A DNA stretch of 63,772 nt, filler included, from Platydemus manokwari (taxonomy: Eukaryota): NCBI GenBank assembly GCA_037951405.1. It is 6 parts of 6 records of this genome, joined end to end, with 100 filler letters (N's around TTAATTAATTAA, not from the genome) between each part and the next. Parts side by side here need not be neighbours in the genome. Positions count along the whole stretch, not along the records: positions 42,201 to 53,346 come from JBBMOY010796647.1; 5 more parts are not named here. One strand, written 5' to 3'. The notes under the pieces were generated by a model. That model saw only the letters and a program-made list of their open reading frames with translations, did no database searches and was not told where the DNA came from. A program made the translations under genes and the position numbers. This document shows positions 1 to 53,346 of the stretch, piece after piece (within the stretch, counting starts at the first letter, position 1; the number at the start of each line of letters is the position of its first letter).

Positions 1-939
1 AAAGATGGGGAAATGTTGTAACTTCCGATGGACATTACTTTGGATAACAGAATTGTACAAGATTTTCTTTAATAAACGCTCAATTGTTCTAAAAAAATTC
101 CGGTTTTTAAGTTATAGACCCAATAAAATTAATTAAATTGATTTATGATGGCTATGCTCTTTGTAAATATAGACGAATTCATCTTATTATATATAACGAA
201 TGACTCTATTATCATAAAAAATTATCGTCTTTAAATTTTATATTAGCCAGTATCTTGGCACAGATTTTGTACTCATTTTTCATTCATTTTCTGATGAGGA
301 GATCCTACTCACAAAGAAAACATCCGAAAGACATTATGTGACATTTATCCACCATGGCTTCTATTGCTGGAAATTGAAACAATAAAGTAAGGTTCAAATA
401 TTTTGCACTCATCATTTGTTGGAGTTTGAATGCATTCACCTATGCTGAATTTGATAAAATTATTGTTTTCGCCTGCTTTATTTCGGTGATATCATTTTAT
501 CAATCAAAACAGTTTTATTGTTCAATGATATTTTCAATGATGAAAACCTATGACAAAATAACTGATGAATTGTGAGGAAAATTCATTGAATCTCTCTGTA
601 TGAACTTGTATGTTCTCAATAATATTTTGTGAAACTTACTGGATTCTATCTGGATTTTATCTTTAACCGTCCACCCAAAAATCAGAATCAGAAGAACTTA
701 AAAATTAATTGATTGGAGCAAAATCTTTTTGTAAATAAATCGATAAAATGTTTACGATATGGTCCAATTTTTAAACCAACATACATATCCATTTAAATCG
801 CTATCCCCATCAAATATTGATATTCAAGTGATATAGCCTTGACTATTTTAATGATTGGAATACATAATAATATCCCAATCATATGCCATGGTCATCAGAT
901 GAAAAAAAATTTCTAATCAATAGAGAAAAATGATCTAAC

Positions 940-3900
940 CTGAAGACAAATGAAAACACGGCAATAATGACCACAGTCATATCCATAATATTCCAAGGAT
1001 CTCTCATATACGAGCCTGGATGAAATATAAGACCCAGATCTATCACCTGAAATTTAAACTAATTATAATAAAATTTCTATTTTACACTCACCTTGAGAAC
1101 CATCTCTACTAGAAACACTGTTGTAAACGCCAGATCAAAATTTTCAAGGAGTTTATTTCGATATGTATAGACAACAGGATCTTCTGCTGCCAACGCTATA
1201 GAGCTGGCAAATATTACCATCATAATAAAAAGGTCAAAGCATCTCAGATTTGCTACAAAATGACAAGTTCTACGAATGAAATTATTCGGAGCGAAGATAA
1301 ATAAGGAACTGTATGGTAGCATTGTTCGTTTAGGTGAAGCTATTGGATTATTATTATTTTCATAGTTTTCTAGTTCGAATATAAGAAATTTAATTTATTA
1401 ATTAGTTACCGGATAACTCTACACGTGTTTCTTGCTGTTCAATGTTTTTTGGCTCAGAGATATTATGACCACTATCTCATCAAAGGTAAAATTAAATCAA
1501 TATTATGGATGTACTTACGATTGATCGACATCACACAATTCGGGCTCCAATGAAGCCATCTGATTTTCAAATAACCGTCTTTGTTCGTTTATTGCTTCTT
1601 CTCGCCTCTAGAAATATTAGCTAGAAATCATTTTATTAAACAATTTCCATTTATTATTTATGTCAATATCTAGATAAATACCTGTACTTCCTTCTTAGTT
1701 TCTTCTTCTTCTGCTGCAGATAGTTCGGCGGCATTGGCCAGATTGTCAACCGCAATAGCTAAGAACACATTCAGCAAAGTATCTAAATATCGAATAATTT
1801 TATCAACATTAATTGCGATTACTGGAAATAATTACAATTGCCGAAAATCACAATGAGGAGAAAATAAGAAGAATAAATCATTGAGAAATCTTTACTATTG
1901 CTGGTTTTCATTTGTGACCTTATTCCGTCATACATAACTTCATTCCAGTTTTCGCCAGTGAGAATCTATAATCTAGATTAATAGAACACAAGGATATTAT
2001 TTAAAGGCTAACCACAAAAACTGTTATTATGGCGCTTGGAAAATTATCAAAATTTAGAGCCGGTTTTCCTTTATCAAAATTAAAGCTAAAGATGATAAAT
2101 GAGTTGTTTAAAACAATTATTTATAGAATTTACTCTCCCCCAAATAATTGCATGCCCAGAAGAGTAAGAATAAAAATAAAAAGGCCTAGAAGCAAAAGCA
2201 GACTGATTATACTTCTCATAGAGCTCAGAAGTGAAAAAACCAGATTTCTAAGGGATGACCAGTACCTGAAAAACAATTAATCATGTGATTATCTCAAAAC
2301 ATGTTTTGTTACCTTGTTAACTTTAGTAATCTTAGTAACCGAATGCATCTCAATGCTGAAAATCCAAAAGATCGTTTAGGATTAATTATTTGAAAGATTG
2401 CCTCAAACAAGCTGGCTGTAACAACCTATGACAAACATAAAATGTCTCTCATATCTTAATCATTAATATATTATCATACTAAAAAGTCAAAAAAATTAAA
2501 TTTTGATCTGAAGTAATCTCGGAATCCCAGCCCGAATACTTTGATGAATAATTCTCCCATGAATATTGTCAAAAAGACATATTCAGCATAAACTTAACAA
2601 GAATAATCAGATAATTATAGCAAATTGTTTGAGTAACGAACACAAAAATTGGTCGAGAAATTTAGGCTGACCGTAGTGCTCCACAGCGACGCAAGCCGTA
2701 TTTAATAATACGAGTGTGATCACACCCCAATAAAATGGTTGAGTTTTGATCGATCTTCTTACTACTGGCCTACAATTATGTTAAGATATATATATTTAGT
2801 CTAAAACAGATTTACCGCATTTCTTTAATGTATCTAATAATAACTTGAAACGGCGATCGGCATTTTTCATTAAGCTCTTCATCTGATTCTTAATAAAACT
2901 TTGCTTAATTGAAATTCATTTGAAAATATTATATACCTTCTAAGTGATCCATAAATTCCTCGGTGGCTTTCTTTCTTTCAAGCCATGTTCTTGTTTGTCG
3001 CCAATCTGTATGACGATATCACATTATCTTATAAATATAGAAATTCCAAAGAAATTTTCAAGTGTCTTCATTTCCAATAACAAAAAATTTGATTATTTTA
3101 GAATCTTTAAATTATTTCACAAAACTCGTGTTTTAGCTTAAAAATCCTCTTCAGTGATAGAAATGGAACACAAGAAATAAAAATTATTATTTTATGAGAA
3201 TTGATCTTTATTTTAGATGAATAAATATGAGATATTTGATTTTGAGGCTTTTGATTATGGTTATTAAAATATTATTATCTTTATTATTTCAATCTTATGA
3301 TTATAATTTGATAATTATTTTATAACATCATTTTTAATAAATACAAACCAACTTTTTATCAACTCTTTCCGTTCTCCTTCAGTTTGTCTATTAGCCACAA
3401 TCATCAGTTCCTCTAATTTAATAATAATATATTTATGATATAAAAATATGAACCTGCGGTGTCTATCCAATCCAGATAGCCTTCAAGTAAATTTTCATAT
3501 TTTTGTGATTCTCTCAACTTTAGAAAAGCCCTTTTTTTCTCAACTCGTTCCCTTTCTTTAGCAAATTTTCTACGTGATATTTTTGTAGCATATAAAGTTC
3601 TAATTTAATCTAACCCGCTAAGTACACCAAGAACAAGATTCAACATGAAAAATGAACCCAAAATGATAATCGTTACAAAATAAAGTACATTCCACTGACT
3701 ATCATTAGCTTTATTTGTCTAGAAAAAGTCTCTGAAGCAATTTAATTAAATAAAAGTTTACATTGTACAAAACATCAGTCCATCCTTCCATCGTTATGCA
3801 TTGGAATACTGTTAGCATAGCGTATCCGATATTATCAAAATTTACAAACCCAAAATATGGTCCCTCCCAATAAGGCTTACACACATATCCAGGACCGCAT

Positions 3901-42200: not shown

Positions 42201-42275
<75 letters not shown>
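42201..42275 (+). repeat. (GATA)n microsatellite
   Basis: Seen directly. Confidence 0.98.
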
Positions 42276-42276
<1 letters not shown>

Positions 42277-42670
42277 CTGGGTCTGAAGTGGTGTGCAATT
42301 AAACATGGGTTTGTTTCTATACACTCATTGAAAGCGTATTGTTTTTTCTAGAAGATATTTTCCTGTAACTTCTATGATGACTGCTGTGGCTGTGCGTGGA
42401 CCCTTTGTCCAGAACTTGAGGTCATTTTGGAGTTGAGTTTGGTTGACGAAGTTTGGTTCTCCTCTAGCACGATGAAGCCACATTAATTGGTGATAGCTCT
42501 TCCTCATTTGCAAACGTTAAGGAGATTGGTGGAGGACAGGGTTTTGTAATTATGTAGAGGAATTGACTGCTTCTGAATTGATGGTTTCCGGATTAATGGC
42601 TTCAGAAATATAATAAAACGTTAGCAGGCAACTAATAATGTTGAAACAACAATTTAATCATGCCTTAGAT

Positions 42671-43132
42671 CAGTGATTCCCAGACGGTCGGTGGTAAATA
42701 CAAGCTCATTTGGGGGCGATAATACTATAAGAATGTAAGGAAATGATTATTGAAAATTTTGATTTATCTCGTTTGCACAAAATTTGGCTTTAAACAACGT
42801 ACTGTACGTTCTCACTAATTCTTATTGAAGTATGTGTAATCACGCACTCAATGGTACTGCTTGTGCGCTTTGTCGCTTGAAACACCGAAGCCTGGTAGTA
42901 GAGTGGTAGTATTTCTGTGATTCCCCGTAATGATTAACTTAAATAAAACTAAAAGAAATGTTAGTTTGTTGTGACATCTTTTTAAAATATTTAATGAAAA
43001 AGATATTAACATTAAGATTTTTTTTATAAATTGCTACTAAAATTAAAAAAAATTGGTGTGGGTTAGTTAGGGAGTCTAAGTAATATTTATTCTGAAAAGG
43101 GGGCGGTACACCGAAAAGTTTGGGGATCACTG
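42671..43132. mobile_element. hAT/Buster MITE, copy 2
   Basis: TIR CAGTGATTCCCA / TGGGGATCACTG and TSD CCTTAGAT; internal sequence collinear with 35602-36086. Confidence 0.95.
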
Positions 43133-43400
43133 CCTTAGATGAACGGTTTGGTATGATTAATAAAGCTTTCTCGCAATTTCGTCACCCCGTTATACTCCCA
43201 ACTAATCTCCTATCTGAGATTGATGAAAGGACAATAGAAATGTGAACCATGAAAAATCTTACCATGTGGAATGAAATCCAATTATGTGTGTAATTCCAAA
43301 TAATTTATGATGAGGATCTTCCTCAGTTTATACACTATCTCTCTCGAAGTATTGACTAAGCGCAATGACGCATAGTCACGTTTTCTCGATGATTTCCTAC

Positions 43401-43453
43401 GTTGCCATGGTTTCATTGATTTCTATGGTCTTTCTGCTAGTTTTCTAGGTAAC
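43401..43453. promoter_or_regulatory. Two RFX X-box-like sites
   Basis: GTTGCCATGGTTTC (43401) and GTTTTCTAGGTAAC (43440), followed by a GTAAG donor at 43466. Confidence 0.45.
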
Positions 43454-44439
43454 GTGAAATTTTATGTAAGTTAGTCATTACTGAATAATTATTTGGCAAT
43501 TTAAAATTTTAAATTTTTGTTTTTTATGAGTAATCGTTATTATATATTTGTTATGATATATTTTATTATTTTTGTTATGTAATTTTTTATTGTTATTATA
43601 CTATTATGTTTATGTACACCTGTATTATTATTTATTTCGATGGATATCTATGTATCTAACATATACATAGAGAGCCTACAAGTTATATAGAACAAAATAA
43701 AACAATAAAATAAGAACTTATTGAGGACAAAACTACTAATATTTATTCGATATTATTATATATCTATGAAGTGTGTAAAGAACCGATTTGAGCAAAGAAG
43801 TTAATTTGTCCAAGTTAATGTAGTTATAATTATCTATTTGAATTAGTATAAGAAGGCATAAATTATCATATTAATTTATATTCCAGCTGAAAACTGGTAG
43901 CTACAATGTATCTCAACATATTTTGTATGCTATATTTTAAAAGGTAAAATATTGCGTAAAAATGTCCTCTTGTACTGTAAGAGATAACGATTTCAGTATT
44001 TTTAAACAACAGTTTGATGAGTTAAAGTCGGGTCTTTTTGTAGAGCAAAGTATTTTTTGAAAAACCTTATTTTTGACTACTGGCATACTTCATTTTTCAT
44101 CATTAATGTAAAATAAAGTGTTTCAAAACATTTGGTTGATTAGAATGATAAATTGATTTCTTAATATTTTAAAAATATTTAATATAAAAAACATTTTCGT
44201 AATAAAAATAAATTAAGTATAAACTGAGTTTAGTAATACTTAATATATTCATTCGTTTACACAAAAGCAAATAAGTAATATAAAAATCTTTGTTAAAATT
44301 ATAATTGTTTGAATACAAATTTGATGATAATTTTGAATTAGTAAATAATTGTACAAATAGAGAAATATACAATACAATTAGATTTTATTTTAATTTTTTA
44401 TATATTCTTAATAATTTGAATATTTAGAGTTATTTCAAA

Positions 44440-45853
44440 ATGTCAAATTATTTGAAGATGTGGGAAATAATGAAAAAATACGATTTTGATGATAATTCCG
44501 AATGGTCGATAGATTTAAAATGTATTATTTGTTGCAAACTCGTAATTGATGCTCGTCAGGGTACTTGTGGTTGTCTTTATTGTGGGAAATGTATTGAAAA
44601 CTACATGGACAATGGTTCGAAAAATTGTCCCGGTGAAATCAACATTGAAAACCATCCAACATTGGAATCATTTCATAATGTTATAATTGACAATAATGCT
44701 AATAGACGAGTTTCAAAATTGAAATACAAATGCCCACAAAATTTTTGCAACCACAACTGTGAATTGATGGAAATGTTCGACCATTTAAGGGTTTGTAATA
44801 AACGAGAAACCAATTGTCCATATCATGAGATTGGATGTCGAGTTGTGGCCATACAGAATGATGAATTGTCAAATCATTTCCAGACAGATGTATATCAGCA
44901 CAGTCTTATGTTAAACGAATGGATAATGAATATTAAAAACGAAATGTCTTCATTGTTGACTAATGAATCGAAAATGTTGATCCAAGAACAAATCGAAGCG
45001 ATCAATACTAATATTTCCAAAATATTGATTGATAATGACGAAGAAAATAAAAGAAAACAAGTAAAAATTGTTGCGATTTTGTGACAAATTAATGTTTTGT
45101 CGACACTTATAGGTTAAAATTGATGAATTGAAAAGGGATGTCACGAAAATCAAGAATAAAAACAAAGAATACGATCGAATGATTCGCAAAATGCAAACGG
45201 AAATCTCCAACAACAATAACGAAATCAATCGTTGGAAAGAGCGTTGTGAAGAGATTAGTTCCTTGATAGACGGCATGAAGCCAATCAATGAATTCCATGG
45301 CATAAAAGGGAAGAAAATCAATGCTTGCCACAATTATTTATCGTCGAATCTCAATGATGAAGTTTGGTCCGTTGAGAATGAGGAAAATATCGCCTGTCAA
45401 ATCAACGAACGCCCATGTTTGCCGTCGATTCCAATCGATTGTTTGTTGTGGGAAATATCGGATTTGAAGAATTTACGGAAGAACCGACGTCGAATTTGGA
45501 GCGATGATTTCCATTCACTTGATTTTGTTTATAAGATGAGATTATTGTTTGATACATTTAGCAGTTTTGACGGATCACAGATGAGTATTCGCTTGTTCAT
45601 GTACGATGGTGATGGGGCGGTTGATAAGGACACTAATTGGCCATTCAAAGGATTGGCAACGGTTACCATTAGCAACCGCGATGATCCACAATCATTCCAA
45701 ACACTATCTCGTTGTTTAGAAGTCAGTAAGCCATCCAATGTTGTGAATGAGGGCCAATTTTTTTATTTCAATTATGTTGATCTCACAAAAGCTGGTGTTT
45801 TGAAATCGAAAACGATTATTATCGATTGGAAAATATCGACCAATCATTGTTGA
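44440..45853 (+). CDS. TRAF-like protein (RING, TRAF zinc finger, coiled coil, MATH), 453 aa; exons 44440-45060 and 45113-45853
   Basis: CIIC..CGCLYCGKC..CPG RING; CP..FC..HLRVC..CPYHEIGC; MATH with YKMRL and WPFKG. The 52-nt phase-0 GT-AG intron joins the two ORFs. Confidence 0.92.
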
Positions 45854-47942
45854 GGGATTCGGTTTTGTTTTAGAATGAATGTAAATTGGTGATTTTTGAT
45901 GATCGATTTATTGCATTGGTTGAAAGGTTGAGATTTGTTTATTTATTTATCGATTATTCCATAATAAGTGTGTTGCTTATATTTTGTATTATTGATTATC
46001 TATAATATTCGGATAATGTTACTATTTTTAATGTGATCGATGAAACATTTTTTTCCAGAATTTTTGAATGAAAATGTAATGAAATTCGATTTTTATTTTT
46101 TGTTAATTTTTTAAATGTAAAATTTAATTGTGATTTTTATTCGATTTATCATCAGATATTACCAAAATATTTGACAAATAATAAATTTATTTTAACCTTT
46201 TACTAATATATTGTTGTGATTTGATGTGTAAGCACAGAAATATTCGTTGTCGTTGATTATATTATCGTTGCGATATATGATACGATTGTGGTTGATGATT
46301 AAATGTGTCACAATTCCAATAGATGTATTTGCAAGAAGTCAGTATCTTTGTCATTTCTACTCATTATTGGATATGAAGTGCTTTATAATTTGCTTGTTTG
46401 CTAATTGGAGATTTGCCACTTCATTTAGATAACTATTGTATAACTTGTTCGAAGTTGATTTGCAGTTATTATTTTCATACACTTAAATTTATATATTTTT
46501 AAAAAGCTTGTTCAAGTAAAATATCTAAATAATTAATGATAACTTCCATCTTAAAGTCGCATAATAAAATTATATTGACCAACTAAATATAATTTTGGAA
46601 TCATTAAAAAATATTCTAATTATTATTACTGAATATGAGATGCAAATTAAATATGTTAAAATAAAAAATTCTATAATGCTATGGGTACAAGTGTGAAATG
46701 AGGAGAATTTACCTGACAATCCAAAATGAACAGAAAAGAGCTATAAATGGGATTAGTTGAAGTATCATATTGGTTGTTATTTTGATTTTGTTTGAATGTA
46801 TTGATGTTTATTCTTTTGTTGATAAATGGTAAACACTGTTTTATCATTTGTTGAGTTATCCAATACGATATTTTTATACATTGAGGTTCAATTAGACAAA
46901 TCATCACATCGCATTATTTATCAATTTTACCCGTGTTCACTCCAGTAACCTCAGTGTTTAAATATAAATCTTCACTGCTAAAGACCATCGATACTCTTTC
47001 TTTGATCATTTATTCATTATAATAATTATAAATTATTATCAAGTAGTTTCTGTGTTAAAAGTCTCACATTTGTATTTGAAACTTACATTTAATTCCGATA
47101 ATTCATTGGTATTCATTAAATATATTTCGACATTCTATTTTACTTTCTGCCACTATTTCTTATCGTTGGACACACATTGAAATTGAATTTTTATGAACAG
47201 GCCCACTATCACATAGGTTTATTTTGCTGCACACACTTAATTTCATTTTTAAAATTTTGAATTCATTTTTTCTATCGCAATTTAATATTGAAGACGATGC
47301 AATCAGTGTTAAGGTGGTAAAAATCAAATCATCAAATGTGACATTGTAACTGATATTATTATAGAAATTCCTTGAATATTTATGAAAATAATTAATACAA
47401 TATAATTTTAATACAAGAAGTAAATTAATAATTTGTTTATAGATACACATTTATTGTACCATGTTCAATAATCTGTTCCGGTCATGCTCGACATTAATCT
47501 TTACTCTTTATAGTAATAATAATGTGATAAAATTAATGATATAATAGATGGTCTTCTTTATTAATATGATAATTAATAATCTAGGGAAAATTTTCATTAC
47601 AGAAATTAAAGATTTGCTTGCTAACATATAATAACAAGCGTGGAAACATAAATCAACGTTAAATTGATTTTTAAGAAAAAATATTTTCGAAATTTAAATA
47701 GTCCGTAGAGATTTGAATTCTCATAAACTGAAATGGTTTCTAAAATTCTCCTGATAATAATCAATTAAATATCTAATAAATATATATCACTGATTTGTTA
47801 ATTGTGTGTTGTGAAATTGTTGCTGGTAATAGATCTAAATTCAGGTTTGGACAAAAACCTTATGCTAAAAATCAATGCCAAAAACATGATAATTATTCAT
47901 AGTGTTCCATCCCATCAAGCGCTAGAGGAATTCTTGATATAA

Positions 47943-48355
47943 ATTGAAGTATACAGAAAAATGTAAACACTTAAATGAAAGCTAATCACTAAAGGAAATA
48001 TGAAATTTACCACTTTAGGATCTGTTTTATGATTTGATTATGTGTACTGTCCTGGAAATAATTTATCAGCAAATAAAATAAATATCTCTGAGCTTACATT
48101 AATAACTGTTGAATGTTTAATAGTTGATGGAAGTTATGTATCTGGAGAAAGAACAAATATTACTTATAATTTTCCAGCTAATAGTGTTCCTCCTGTCTAT
48201 ATATGTATATTGAAGAAGTAAATCAAGTCATCTATTTCCCGATATTTAATAAATGTATTACTGAGATTTCTTTTAAAATAACTAATCGAAATGGAAATTT
48301 AATAGACTTTAATGATGAAGAAATCTAATTACACCTTCATCTTAAACAAGTTTGA
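47943..48355 (+). pseudogene. Maverick/Polinton (adintovirus-like) minor capsid/penton pseudogene, C-terminal half
   Basis: TLGSVL*FD..INISELTLITVECLIVDGSYVSGERTNITYNFPANSVPP[frameshift]IEEVNQVIYFPIFNKCITEISFKITNRNGNLIDFNDEEI*LHLHLKQV. Confidence 0.8.
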
Positions 48356-48449
48356 ACGAAGTTCTTTCAATTTTTCATTTAAAAATGTATATGATAAATT
48401 TTCTAAGAATATATGAAACTAATAAAACTACTAATTTTTATTTAAATGA

Positions 48450-48690
48450 TTTAAATTTAGATACTAAAATTATCATTTAGAAACTACAAAAATATAGAGA
48501 TTCTCAGTCGTTATAAATAAGCAAATTTCATAATATATAATTTGATCCTTATGGAATTTTACCAACTAAAGAACTTTATGAATTCATTGGTAAATATTTT
48601 ATATAACAATATTGAAATATAAAATTAGGGAGAATTATGTGGGAATTATCTTTGTATGTTTTATATTGTTCAAATAATGTATTAGAATTT
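48450..48690 (+). pseudogene. Maverick/Polinton adenain (C5-like cysteine protease) remnant
   Basis: FDPYGILPTKELYEF at 48541, then a frameshifted YNNIEI*N*GELCGNY with the Cys at 48638. Confidence 0.65.
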
Positions 48691-50978
48691 TATTATATTA
48701 TTGACCATTTGAAAAATGAGGCTGGTAACCGGAAGTGATTCATAAATTTGATAATAGTTTAGTAAATAATATGAAAGATATTCAAGAAATAATAATATTA
48801 TTGAGTACGAATTTATGATAGAAAATATATTAATTGGGATGGTCATTATATGAAAGGAAATTTGGGATTAAATGACAAACAAAATAACAAACATAGTAGA
48901 TCCTAAAAATGAATTTGATGCAGTTAATAAAAAATATCTTGAAAGGTGTTTCGGAGGGGTTGAAAAGTATTTCAAAAATGAAATTGGTAAAACTGATAAA
49001 AAGCTTAGAATTTATCTTTCTTAAAATAGCAAAAGGCCTGAATAAATTAGAAATAGCAAAATGTCAATTGATAATATTTTTTAAAAAATATTGATAAACT
49101 TCATTCATTATATAAATCAATAATTACCATGATGGATTATAAAAAAAAGAAATCAATGCAATCTCAGAAAAAGTTGAACATTTGAAATTCATAGAATAAA
49201 AAACAGGAACTTCAATTTATAAGACAAGCAGATAAAAATTAGACAATAAGTTAAATAATTTTTTTAACTTTTATTTTTGTTATAAAGATAAAAAAGAAAT
49301 CAGAAAATTAATATAAACTTTTTACATAATTTAGTACAATAATTAAGAATTATAAAAGTGATGAAAATAGTTACAAAAAATTTTTATTAAATTTATTAAA
49401 GAAAAAGGGTTCAATAGAACTTCTTTTGCAATGGAACTATAATTTTTAATGGTGATCCACTTAAAAATCAAAAAAATGTTGAAATAAATTATAAGAATCT
49501 ATAAATTGGTTTTGTTTTTGAGAATATTAAAAATAATAAAATAAGTAATATCGGAATAAAAGGTTATTATTCATACATGAAAATTAGTAACCATATACAC
49601 CAAAAATTTTATATAGGGAAACAGTTGTAAACCGAAAATTTGCACTTAATAGGAAAATGCAAAAAGTACAATAAAAAAAACCAAATATACATGATTTGAG
49701 ACATATTTCAGATTTAAGGATTATATATGGGAGATTGAATTATCATAATATGACATTAAAATATAATAATCATTCTAAAAACCATGTAGTCCAGAATCAC
49801 GAAATAAATGATCACAATTGATGATGAACACCTTAATAAAATCAGCAGGACTGGCTCCTAATAAGCTCAGTGAAAGCGGAATATGATGAAAGAAGTCGAA
49901 GAACAAAAGACATGCGTGAGAAAAAAAAGAGAGAGAGAATAACAAGAAAAGAATATAACATCGATATTTGATGCCGATGACTAAGTTCAAAATTAAAACA
50001 AAAAAATCCCAAGCAAACAATCCAAATGAAAATGGTGTAACAATCATATGATATCGACTGGAATCTTGATTTTTTATTAGCCGTTCGACTTCTTGAAAAT
50101 TTTGAATTTTTAATAGTAAAATCGAATTTGATTAAAATTTTGACCTCTGATATTCGATATCACTTGTTATGACGATGATGTATTTATTTTTAATTCGATT
50201 ATGATTTTTGTTGTAACACAACACTTGTATTATCATCAATTAATCAAAGATAAAAACAAATAATAACAAATCATATGAAAATCAAAGTTTAGTATTTTAA
50301 AATAATATTAGAAAAATAAATAAAAATAGAATAAAATGCGTAGATAAGTTTAACAAATTTGATAAATAAATCTTTAAAATTAGCGGATATTATATAACGA
50401 CAATACATCGGTGAATTCAATAAAATCGCCATTGAATTAGAGAAAGAAAATTAGCTAGGATTAATAATTAGAACCTGAAAGTAAAGATTATTATTTGAGA
50501 AGTCACATGTCTGAATATAAAGATTATTGTTTGAGGAAACAATGAGAGAAATGAAAGTTAGCGAATTAAAATTAAAATAAATAACAAGCCAGCAGGTTCT
50601 GATCTTCTGGACCTATAACAAATAATATTTTAAATTCTATATAATGAACTTTTCGGAAATAAAACATTATACTTGCCACTCTGGGCAAGTTAATATCAGC
50701 AAATCTTTTGTAAAAATAAATGTTAAAACATTGTAAACATTTGTCATTTTGTAATTAATTTTAATATTTGTAATGGCGCTTCAAAATAAAACTTTGTATT
50801 TAATTTTAAAGGGAAGAACAAAAGGCTTTTATATATAAGAACTCAATTTTATTTATTTAAAATCCAGTCGAGTTCTGCGTGGTACTTTAGCCACAATATA
50901 GTAATCCTAGGTTTTGGATTATTTGATGAATTTGTCTTTAAATTAGTATATTAACGTGGTAGGTATTTTCTAGATTTC

Positions 50979-51036
50979 TTTTAATTCTGCCTCTGGTCCG
51001 AGGCACTGATGAGGCCCATGGAAGGCCGAAATAAAA
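50979..51036 (+). ncRNA. Type III hammerhead ribozyme motif
   Basis: UUC / stem I UGCCUC-(UGGUCC)-GAGGCA / CUGAUGA / stem II GGCC-(CAUGGAA)-GGCC / GAAA. Stem III is imperfect. Confidence 0.8.
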
Positions 51037-51117
51037 CACTATATGTACCATAAAACTACCATCATGATCGTCATCATCACTGCAGCCATCGTTCTTGAAG
51101 GCTCCGAGAGATCAACA

Positions 51118-51166
51118 AGTCCTGCATATCGCTGTACCGAAATACTAATGAGGCCGAAATAGGACT
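51118..51166 (+). ncRNA. Second, degenerate or minimal type III hammerhead motif
   Basis: Stem III AGUCCUG/UAGGACU; stem I UAUcgC-(UGUACC)-GaaAUA; core CUaAUGA-GGCC-GAAA. Confidence 0.6.
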
Positions 51167-51939
51167 AATTTTCAGCAAAAGGTAAATTATTCATTTACTT
51201 ATTTATATTTTGACCACTAATAGTTTGCTAATTGAACCGATAGGGATTAAACATCAATGCAGTCGATTGGTAAACCGATCGTGCAGTGTTTTTAATTAAC
51301 ACTCCAAGTTAAATTAAAGTAAAAACCTGAGAAGGAAAAACAAAGATTAAATAAGTATTCTTATCAAGGCGAGGTGTTATTTTAATATTAAATAGCATTT
51401 ATTCTTGACAGAGACATTAATCTAATAAAATCTTGTAACTTTTCTATAATCTAAATGGCTTCAGAATCGTTATACATGAAAATGTTTTATGATATTTAGA
51501 AGAATTCTCTAGAGAATTTTGTGATTTTAATAACTAGCTATAAAATTTCGTTACCACGCATAAATTCTACAATAACAAATAACTCTATTTATTTCCCTCT
51601 TAAAGCGACAGAGTGGATTCTATCCCTTACAGTCCCAAACCCTTGAACCTATTGATATTGATTAATCAACACCAATGATTTTTTCCCTACATTCGAAATT
51701 ACAAAATATCGCCAGTTAATGAGCTGCTTTTATTTCAGAAATAAATATTTATCAAACTATCGTTTTTCATTTGTATCTTCCAACAAATAAAATTAATGCA
51801 TAAAATCCGGTTGCATTTGATTGGGAATTCGATAAAATCTATTCTTCACTTGTTTATTTGCATTCCATACTATCGCAATGATAGTGACAATTATATTTCT
51901 ACTCTCTCTATCTATCAGATATTTTCCGATTTTTTTCCC

Positions 51940-52426
51940 ATGTTTATAATTGGTTTTTCGTTGGTTTTGTTCATTTGTCTGCTATCATCGTCGCTTGAAT
52001 ATACCGGTGTAGATATTGACACAGATCACCAACGCAATGGGTTTCTCACCGTCAAAGTGAGTTTTCATTTGAAAAATTATGTTAAAATTTAATGATATAA
52101 ATATTATAACATATATTTATGAAAGTAATTTCATTAATTTGTGAATAAAATGTGTATTGATGTGGAATATTTCAACATTAAACTGAATCTTTGACAGGGG
52201 AAATATTTATCTTCCGCTCGGCACAGAACTGTGTTAACAATGTTTATTGATGAATTGATGACTTGTATTGGTTGTGTTGATATAATTGATAAATGGGAAA
52301 TATTGGAAGAGTTATATCATAGCGATTATTGGTAATTTTCTCAGATTTTTTGAAAGGGTTTAAATTTCTTTCTGCAGGATTGAAATCAGACATTTTGTCT
52401 CATCAAATTTAATAGAATCAATGTAA
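51940..52426 (+). CDS. Orphan 99-aa protein with a predicted signal peptide; exons 51940-52056, 52198-52331, 52378-52426
   Basis: Canonical phase-compatible GT-AG introns; hydrophobic N-terminus MFIIGFSLVLFICLLSSS. Confidence 0.65.
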
Positions 52427-53346
52427 ATTTTGCATTTCCAGTTTGGAATTATTTTTATCTCGTGCTGAATTAATTTATGGTTTCCATAGTAATGAGATAA
52501 ATATTTTAAAAAAGTTTATATAATCTGACTTTTTTATATTAATTTACATTAATTTATAAGTATAAAATATTTATATTTATTATTTTATTTATTTATTTAT
52601 AACATTTATTTTATGATAATATATAATTATCATATATAATTACAATGTTAAAATGTTATTTATTTATCACTATATTATCTGAAATATTCTATAAGGATAA
52701 AAATTGTCTGTAAAAGTGAGAATTAAAATTTAATACATCCTAACAGAGACAATACAATGACACTGTGTTGTTTACAACTTGTTTACCACTGTAGCATTTT
52801 CCTGGGTTTTTTTTTCTAAAACATTACTAAGAGGAACCATGAAAGAAGTCATGGATAATTGAAAAAAATAAATTAATCATGCTTGATTACTTGTCGATAT
52901 CGCTGATAGGTTCAATTCAGTACAATGCAATATTTTTCAATAGGGTTTCCCCACTCATGGGAATTGATTGAAGGCTTATTTCCCATTAATCGCGATTATC
53001 ACACAATAACTATTTTATTGTTTTTATTACATTCTCTCCATGTTTCGACTTCCTCATCATTATCTCAATGGACCAGTGTGTTTCAGTTTTATATTTCGGT
53101 GTTGGTGACCTGACATTTTAAAAGGTGGTTAAGGATAATTAATTGATATTTTTCCCAATACATTCAAGTCATTAATTCGATTTTCTTTTTTAGAATCTCA
53201 AGAGGAATTCCTTTCTTTATAACAAAGCACTCATCAGCGAATTAAGAAAACTGAGACATATCTACAAACAAATCAAGAAAGTTGGTTAAAATGTGAAATA
53301 TAAACGTGATTTGTTAATGTAATAAATAACGAACCATGGTTATTTA

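Follow-up and report, generated by a model that had tools for sequence, protein, structure and literature searches.

The hammerhead motifs of the locus

The window considered in this work is a stretch of DNA of 63,772 nucleotides from the Platydemus manokwari genome assembly GCA_037951405.1, and the element in question lies in one of its pieces (positions 42201-53346, record JBBMOY010796647.1). In particular, at 50856-51237, in non-coding DNA 5 kb downstream of a TRAF-like gene, two motifs with the organisation of type III hammerhead ribozymes follow each other on the plus strand. Quite probably, this interval is an old and disabled representative of a non-coding repeat that exists in many copies; members of the family that have remained intact would encode a canonical type III hammerhead and would undergo retrozyme-like processing.

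The first motif (motif 1) can be read directly in the sequence as a complete type III hammerhead centre at 50986-51031, which forms a patch of 61% GC in a piece with a GC content of 27%. From its 5′ side, it is composed of a UUC cut-site triplet ending at C50987, after which cleavage is predicted; a 6-bp helix I, UGCCUC/GAGGCA (50988-50993/51000-51005), which together with its loop UGGUCC occupies 50988-51005; an intact CUGAUGA core box (51006-51012); a 4-bp helix II, GGCC/GGCC (51013-51016/51024-51027), closed by the 7-nt loop CAUGGAA; and an intact GAAA box (51028-51031) followed by U. The triplet has the NUH form expected of a hammerhead cut site, with U16.1 opposite A15.1. Both in the alignment to a covariance model (CM) and in the minimum free energy (MFE) fold, helices I and II are closed by loops and helix III is open. 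These elements, including the intact core and the predicted cut after C50987, correspond to what a first-pass annotation of this DNA had described, and they are also the parts recovered in the alignment to the Rfam family Hammerhead_3.

Specifically, Hammerhead_3 (RF00008) aligns exactly the parts of motif 1 and scores them at 21.3 bits; the E-value is 1.2 when the whole piece is searched and 0.041 for a search of 391 nt. The alignment covers model positions 7-48 of 54 and leaves helix III unmatched, and it is for this reason that the score stays below the Rfam gathering score of 48.5. A search of the piece with this model, which had been put forward as a check, thus returned motif 1 under the cut-off and did not return motif 2. 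For comparison, an unrelated metagenome contig rich in GC (L001, Ga0256853_1000531) carries a type III hammerhead-like motif with all its parts, and even this reaches only 33.7 bits; therefore, 21.3 bits for a motif without helix III do not constitute counter-evidence. Moreover, motif 1 is the sole match in the 11,146-nt piece to a strict descriptor demanding an NUH triplet, a helix I of at least 5 bp, CUGAUGA, a helix II of at least 4 bp and GAAA. The same descriptor found nothing in 40 Mb of dinucleotide-matched random sequence, in which the bare word CUGAUGA occurs 3,132 times, and motif 1 is therefore rarer than expected by chance. Between its two loops, the UCC of UGGUCC and the GGA of CAUGGAA could pair; in another copy of the element, loop 2 has a different sequence (UACAAAG).

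The second motif (motif 2) is found on the same strand at a distance of 139 nt, and the two share 24 nt at 75% identity, with no direct repeat detected beyond this hammerhead match. Its elements and the spacing are again those reported at first reading. The motif opens with the 5′ strand of helix III, AGUCCUG (51118-51124), and with the equivalent of the cut site after A51126 (whole segment 51118-51126), where position 16.1 is a C. A remnant of helix I follows at 51127-51144 (UAUCGC, loop UGUACC, GAAAUA), in which four of the six places pair. The core box of motif 1 appears here in the mutated form CUAAUGA (51145-51151), with G5 changed to A, and it is followed by a bare GGCC (51152-51155), half of helix II and its loop being absent, by GAAA (51156-51159) and by the 3′ strand of helix III, UAGGACU (51160-51166). 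In other words, the combination of CUGAUGA and GAAA is present in motif 1 and broken in motif 2. No hammerhead match to motif 2 was obtained in the Rfam covariance search, lax filters included, and its fold is worse than that of shuffled sequence (z +0.85).

A repeat family with a common ribozyme form

The contigs of the one public run found to contain this DNA were aligned to 50500-51700 at a likeness of at least 80%, and this alignment, which reports best-supported differences only, is the source of all family data given here. A lack of other genomic copies had been named beforehand as an outcome that would speak against a hammerhead element; on 50856-51237, 485 contigs align. Sorted by likeness to this copy, 33 of them fall at 99% or more, 49 at 95-99%, 131 at 90-95% and 272 under 90%, so that the majority is less than 90% alike. 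The summed contig depth ranges from 145 to 3,177 across 50828-51237, compared with 10.7-10.8 on either side; summed depth is not a copy number, and these values support only the existence of many diverged copies. The flanks are single-copy, each being covered by one contig at depth 10.7-10.8 with no differences.

Within the repeat, several parts can be distinguished. The contigs begin to fit at 50856; the left edge of the copy (50856-51237) is approximate. The deepest coverage (2,031-3,177) falls on a conserved upstream block at 50869-50955, the spacer of the 139-nt unit (51039-51117), which contains an ATC-rich run, lies inside the repeat at a depth of about 820-880, and the 3′ tail (51167-51237) starts at a depth of 1,293 and continues at 219, with 10.7 reached after 51237. 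The loose contig ends before 50856 agree with each other (0.73), meaning that other copies extend upstream with shared sequence. Those behind 51218 are mutually discordant (agreement 0.57), the 3′ flanks differing among copies. Shared upstream sequence combined with differing 3′ flanks looks like a set of 5′-truncated dispersed insertions. Inside the 11,146-nt piece, neither BLASTN nor pattern search gave a second copy.

The letters carried by the other copies restore what motif 1 lacks in the window. Most of the depth has insertions behind 50983 or 50985 (GTC, CC, CCTA, TA, A, G), and the consensus of the letters preceding 50986 ends in AGTCCTA (agreement 0.79). The upstream part of this consensus matches the window at 50961-50982, and therefore the AGTCCTA letters share the context of motif 1. 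On the opposite side of the motif, A51034 is replaced by G in 1,204 of 1,363 depth and A51035 by G in 1,160 of 1,336. AGTCCTA joined to T50986 gives AGTCCTAT, and reverse-complementing these letters yields exactly ATAGGACT, the sequence that flanks motif 2 on its 3′ side at 51159-51166. From this complementarity, the common form of motif 1 is predicted to have a perfect helix III of 7-8 bp, identical to that of motif 2. Accordingly, when the letters reported for most copies are placed in the 76-nt ribozyme region and this region alone is folded, the MFE structure is a textbook type III three-way junction (-23.4 kcal/mol, z -2.1), with a 7-bp helix III, an unpaired C17, a 6-bp helix I, an open core and a 4-bp helix II. 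The cut-site triplet of most other copies at motif 1 is AUC.

A similar picture emerges at the position of motif 2. There, 51124 reads A for G in 131 of 146 and 51125 reads T for C in 104 of 146, so most copies carry AGUCCUAU followed by A, that is, a helix III strand with U16.1 and an AUA site. Furthermore, one contig reads CTGATGAGGCCTACAAAG and then continues at 51152 (GGCCGAAA in the window), so that in this contig motif 2 has its core intact and its helix II complete. At least one copy thus has CUGAUGA-GGCC-UACAAAG-GGCC-GAAA, as opposed to CUAAUGA-GGCC-GAAA in the window. Another arrangement is documented by a contig that joins 51016 to 51151 with at least 41 letters on each side, and therefore copies with a single hammerhead running into the tail exist as well. 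Taken together, the locus belongs to a many-copy family whose common form has three helices and a full core, and in which one-unit and two-unit copies co-exist. In its common form, the motif matches a type III hammerhead in predicted structure and may be taken to work like one, and the element may be classed as retrozyme-like.

These data support the inference of the first-pass annotation, which had taken the locus for one copy of an element with two type III hammerheads: the contigs are many, the flanks are single-copy and the common letters restore helix III. Two of its supporting arguments do not survive. The pairing AGUCCUG/UAGGACU had been regarded as covariation with respect to motif 1, since its letters differ from those of motif 1 in the window; this helix is helix III of motif 2, and most copies have those very letters around motif 1. 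The argument fails because in the family both motifs share one helix III sequence. Likewise, the bare palindromic GGCC of motif 2 had been compared to minimal hammerhead designs acting as dimers, and it proves to result from a deletion here, since GGCC-UACAAAG-GGCC stands at this place in at least one other member of the family.

Decay of the copy in the window

In the window itself, the 5′ strand of motif 1 helix III survives as a remnant which, together with UUC, occupies 50979-50987 and is devoid of the letters that most copies have before 50986; the 3′ strand (51032-51038) reads UAAAACA, compared with UAGGACA in most copies. Helix III of motif 1 has been lost through the missing letters of its 5′ strand and the change of GG to AA in its 3′ strand. 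Only four of ten in-register places can pair, and a fold held in the hammerhead register is less favourable than helices I and II alone (-5.9 and -15.9 kcal/mol, respectively). The MFE structure of motif 1 in this copy either misfolds or pairs AUUUC at 50974-50978 with the GAAAU of the core. The initial description of this helix as bulged but able to extend thus falls short of its actual state. Motif 2, in turn, bears four lesions, namely the change of U16.1 to C, the change of G5 to A, an 11-nt loss by which helix II was deprived of its loop and of one strand, and several mispaired places in helix I.

For cleavage, a hammerhead needs two invariant positions, G5 and U16.1, as well as a helix III that directly adjoins the core. 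For this reason, neither motif of this copy should be expected to cleave efficiently, as far as can be judged from the letters. The interval 50856-51237 would then be a dead member, with two units, of a repeat family that carries hammerheads, and it has no likely function of its own. That this copy might be partly decayed had been recognised at the outset; decay there is, and its extent had been understated, as both ribozymes look dead. By folding, the whole element in this copy has a z-score of -1.14.

A possible mechanism of processing

In the family ribozyme, as we would reconstruct it, helix III would be formed by AGUCCUAU/AUAGGAC(U/A), with AUC or AUA as cut site; next would come a helix I of 6 bp closed by a loop of 6 nt, then CUGAUGA, a 4-bp GGCC helix II and GAAAU. 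Two such units in direct order, 139 nt apart, would be placed between the conserved upstream block and the conserved tail. In intact two-unit members, a transcript originating from read-through or from the element itself could cut itself at both sites and thereby release a unit RNA of about 130-140 nt with 5′-OH and 2′,3′-cyclic phosphate ends. In the released unit, the 5′ strand of helix III would be located at the 3′ end, and the remainder of the ribozyme in the 5′ part; because both units have the same helix III, end-joining would rebuild one complete hammerhead. Release of a unit followed by joining of its ends would reproduce the processing logic of rolling-circle RNAs and retrozymes (PMC4918200, PMC7229834). 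By analogy with these systems, we infer that members of the family may be transcribed, cleave themselves, circularise and spread by reverse transcription. No public RNA run containing the stretch was found.

Comparison with known hammerhead elements

Typical type III hammerheads, as found in plant retrozymes and subviral RNAs, have a 6-bp helix I with a loop of 6-8 nt, a helix II of 4 bp whose loop has 4 nt, and a GAAAY box (PMC7936874). The element described here has the same topology and the same core (CUGAUGA, GAAA, NUH) as the hammerheads of plant long terminal repeat (LTR) retrozymes, of hammerhead viroids and of plant virus satellite RNAs (RF00008). It also shares with the plant and subviral type III motifs the 6-bp helix I with a 6-nt loop, the 4-bp helix II and the GAAAY box (PMC7936874), and differs from them in loop 2, which has 7 nt here and about 4 nt there. 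At the level of the whole element, the resemblance to plant LTR retrozymes is limited to the type III hammerhead. In those elements the hammerheads are 600-1000 nt apart, whereas the distance here is 139 nt, in a host that is probably an invertebrate and at about 27% GC. Plant LTR retrozymes also carry two LTRs of about 350 bp, with a hammerhead inside each of them, a tRNA-Met primer-binding site, a polypurine tract and 4-bp target duplications, while in this element no LTR, primer-binding site or polypurine tract was recognised. A plant-type primer-binding site was searched for as a candidate feature of the element and dropped, as nothing matched.

Animal non-LTR retrozymes (PMC7229834; bioRxiv 10.64898/2026.07.22.740005) resemble the present family in being short non-coding repeats, rich in AT and present in many copies, whose hammerheads follow each other in the same orientation. 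They occur in monomeric and multimeric forms, as this family does, and their unit RNA can rebuild a hammerhead on end-joining, which is predicted for this family too. However, their hammerheads are of type I with a weak helix III, in contrast to the type III motif and strong helix III of this family, and in the animal elements every unit bears such a type I motif. As regards the array, two 139-nt units are enclosed here between the upstream block and the tail, and single-unit copies exist too. Accordingly, the element appears to belong to neither described class of retrozymes: it falls outside the animal class because of the wrong hammerhead type and the conserved flanks, and outside the plant class because it has no LTRs, no primer-binding site and the wrong spacing.

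Hammerheads have been reported in other animal contexts. The motifs of hepatitis delta virus (HDV)-like RNAs, termites and dipterans (PMC7936874) have the type III topology seen here, but they are isolated and possess extended helices I and II and a Watson-Crick pseudoknot, while the motifs of this family are short, canonical and part of a many-copy repeat. Penelope-like elements and Terminons carry hammerheads on animal retroelements; these are of type I, with a helix III of 1 bp and a palindromic loop, and act as dimers. The bare GGCC of motif 2 is not comparable to the palindrome of Penelope-like elements, being what remains of helix II after the 11-nt loss and not common to at least one other copy. 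The hammerheads of animal repeats and retrozymes are reported to be of type I (PMC3088659, PMC7229834, bioRxiv 10.64898/2026.07.22.740005). Type III elements in insects have received a passing mention as work in preparation, with reference to RNA 2010 16:1943 (PMC7761336), and de la Pena and colleagues proposed that plants acquired type III elements horizontally, with insects or bacteria as donors (PMC7761336).

In this context, the family behind the locus is probably a new variant, a repeat with a canonical type III hammerhead in an invertebrate, for which a prior description in insects is possible. A bolder proposal is that an invertebrate genome hosts many copies of type III retrozymes of the plant and viroid style, with a unit of about 130-140 nt, independently of the type I, Penelope-linked retrozymes of animals; this remains tentative, and we hold it to be somewhat doubtful. 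If true, it would provide the smallest ribozyme-processed RNA circles known and a candidate source, on the animal side, for the proposed transfer of type III elements into plants (PMC7761336). If a short type III hammerhead of canonical form has indeed been amplified in what is probably an invertebrate, hammerhead type would no longer follow the kingdom as a rule. The family could offer a concrete test bed for asking if the retrozyme cycle can operate in animals with type III elements, and also if transfer or convergence accounts for the relationship between the elements of plants and animals.

Weighing of alternative explanations

A number of observations weigh against a retrozyme-like element. 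The 139-nt unit of this copy (50988-51126) is not unusually structured (-30 kcal/mol, z 0.03), and in size, at about 130-140 nt, and in structure it departs from the retrozyme circles described so far, which are highly self-paired (PMC7229834, PMC4918200) and in animals measure 170-400 nt. Animal retrozymes are plain tandem arrays of about 150-450 bp, whereas conserved, non-repeated flanks surround the units here. The score of motif 1 lies below the Rfam threshold, its loop 2 has 7 nt and not the usual 4, and the contacts between its loops are only predicted. The sequence of the 3′ tail contains no poly(A), no initiator tRNA-Met primer-binding site was found in the element, searches for a B box and for a tRNA gave nothing, and no partner element was identified. 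Finally, all family data come from one alignment of the contigs of one run, which may be the source sample of the window itself, and no other copy was recovered as sequence.

Several of these observations are shared by the main rival explanation, according to which the element is a repeat of the short interspersed element (SINE) or satellite type, in which a single hammerhead merely trims the transcript, as has been proposed for the Sm-alpha repeats of Schistosoma and the satellite 2 repeats of newts; no circle would then be produced, and the two-unit form would represent a local duplication. Single-hammerhead copies do exist; the upstream block and the tail are as deep as the spacer or deeper (about 3,000 and 1,300, compared with about 850); the shared upstream extension with differing 3′ flanks fits 5′-truncated dispersed insertions; and the unit is not rod-like. 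What speaks for unit release is the helix III shared by both units, by virtue of which a released unit can rebuild a hammerhead, the hallmark of rolling-circle and retrozyme processing; in addition, a repeat of that kind finds no support in a tRNA-like part, a B box or a poly(A) tail, none of which was found. A tRNA-like SINE head was dropped on the same grounds, neither tRNA nor B box having been found. Overall, we regard mere trimming as rather unlikely. More sceptically, the hammerhead might be a chance look-alike within a repeat of the usual kind, none of whose copies would function as a ribozyme, in line with the sub-threshold Rfam score and the unremarkable folds of this copy. This is very improbable, given that the descriptor found no match in 40 Mb of matched random sequence, that the third helix lost here is perfect in the common form of the family, and that a second unit has an identical helix III with, in another copy, an intact core.

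The first-pass annotation had also considered a co-opted self-cleaving leader, and in this form the locus would supply a host gene, coding for a small secreted peptide, with its leader or its first exon. An open reading frame (ORF) of 39 codons spans 51043-51162 on the plus strand; translation from its inner ATG (51064) gives a peptide that begins with a hydrophobic stretch, a TATA-like box precedes the ORF at 50830-50839 and a donor-like AAG|GTAAAT occurs at 51176-51184 (split at 51178). Nevertheless, the ORF, the donor-like site and both motifs all lie inside the unit of a many-copy repeat, the stop of the ORF comes ahead of the donor-like site, and no Pfam family matches the 32 codons that start at the inner ATG (51064-51162). 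Other copies show an indel near 51069 and many C/T changes, and a working hammerhead at this place would remove the cap. The ORF is thus probably fortuitous, and the leader hypothesis retains hardly any likelihood. As to a host exon at 51043-51184, that reading was rejected, since the interval lies within the repeat. Just as remote is the possibility that the element derives from a circular RNA replicon, similar to viroids or to HDV, that became integrated as DNA; toad and termite examples of such RNAs have type III hammerheads. Animal type III hammerheads have so far been tied to HDV-like RNAs and to isolated genomic motifs of termites and flies (PMC7936874), which would favour such an origin. 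The hammerheads of HDV-like RNAs, however, have long helices I and II and pseudoknots, in contrast to the short and canonical architecture found here; moreover, neither a ribozyme on the opposite strand nor a delta-antigen-like ORF was found, and the family consists of many DNA copies.

Additional features of the element and its surroundings

Some minor features of the repeat deserve mention. In the upstream block, a hairpin UAAUCC/GGAUUA (50903-50908/50917-50922) is followed by UGAUGA, and the hairpin with UUUGAUGA (50903-50929) faintly recalls a hammerhead helix I with its core box. A third hammerhead in this block was taken into account and dropped, as no covariance model matched. Two 17-nt arms with 76% complementarity, at 50931-50947 and 51164-51180, connect the upstream block with the tail; the second arm overlaps the 3′ strand of motif 2 helix III, and in single-unit copies the two could form an alternative rod that blocks the ribozyme. 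The TATA-like box mentioned above (TATATATAAG) lies about 20 nt before the point from which the repeat fits other copies, and it is probably fortuitous because it belongs to the unique flank. Matches resembling small nucleolar RNAs at 50883-50948 (minus strand) and 51139-51216 (plus strand) are far under their cut-offs and were taken as chance.

Searches beyond the run gave little. The letters of the core and of helix III, used in exact-pattern scans of metagenome, viral and prokaryote-genome contigs, had no match, and a word search with a 57-codon open frame crossing motif 1 on the minus strand returned no candidate. A looser pattern scan matched only L001, the metagenome contig introduced above. 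Its hammerhead-like stretches (574-632, 1091-1158 and 2456-2518) all lie on the plus strand within 2 kb and comprise, besides the full motif, two weaker matches, one type II-like and one HH9-like. The letters of helices I and II on this contig are identical to those of motif 1 because the search pattern fixed them. In bacteria, closely spaced hammerhead motifs have been reported near prophage genes (PMC3088659).

As for the genomic surroundings, the TRAF-like gene is the sole recognisable gene in the piece 42201-53346, no other ORF having a Pfam match. It occupies 44440-45853 on the plus strand as two ORFs separated by a 53-nt GT..AG intron at about 45061-45113, and encodes a RING domain, a TRAF-type zinc finger, a coiled coil and a MATH domain. 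A word search within length limits gave no close relative of the protein, and for the MATH half none at E ≤1e-5; an exact look-up of the ORF matched no record. In a feature search, the clusters that come closest to the two halves are those of Arthropoda, Cnidaria and Rotifera, from which the host was judged to be probably an invertebrate animal. A (GATA)n microsatellite at 42201-42276 marks the left end of the piece. Closer to the hammerhead repeat and unrelated to it, a second contig aligns at 50541-50603 with 11 differences, raising the depth to 24 from 10.8, and may represent either the other allele or a low-copy duplicate.

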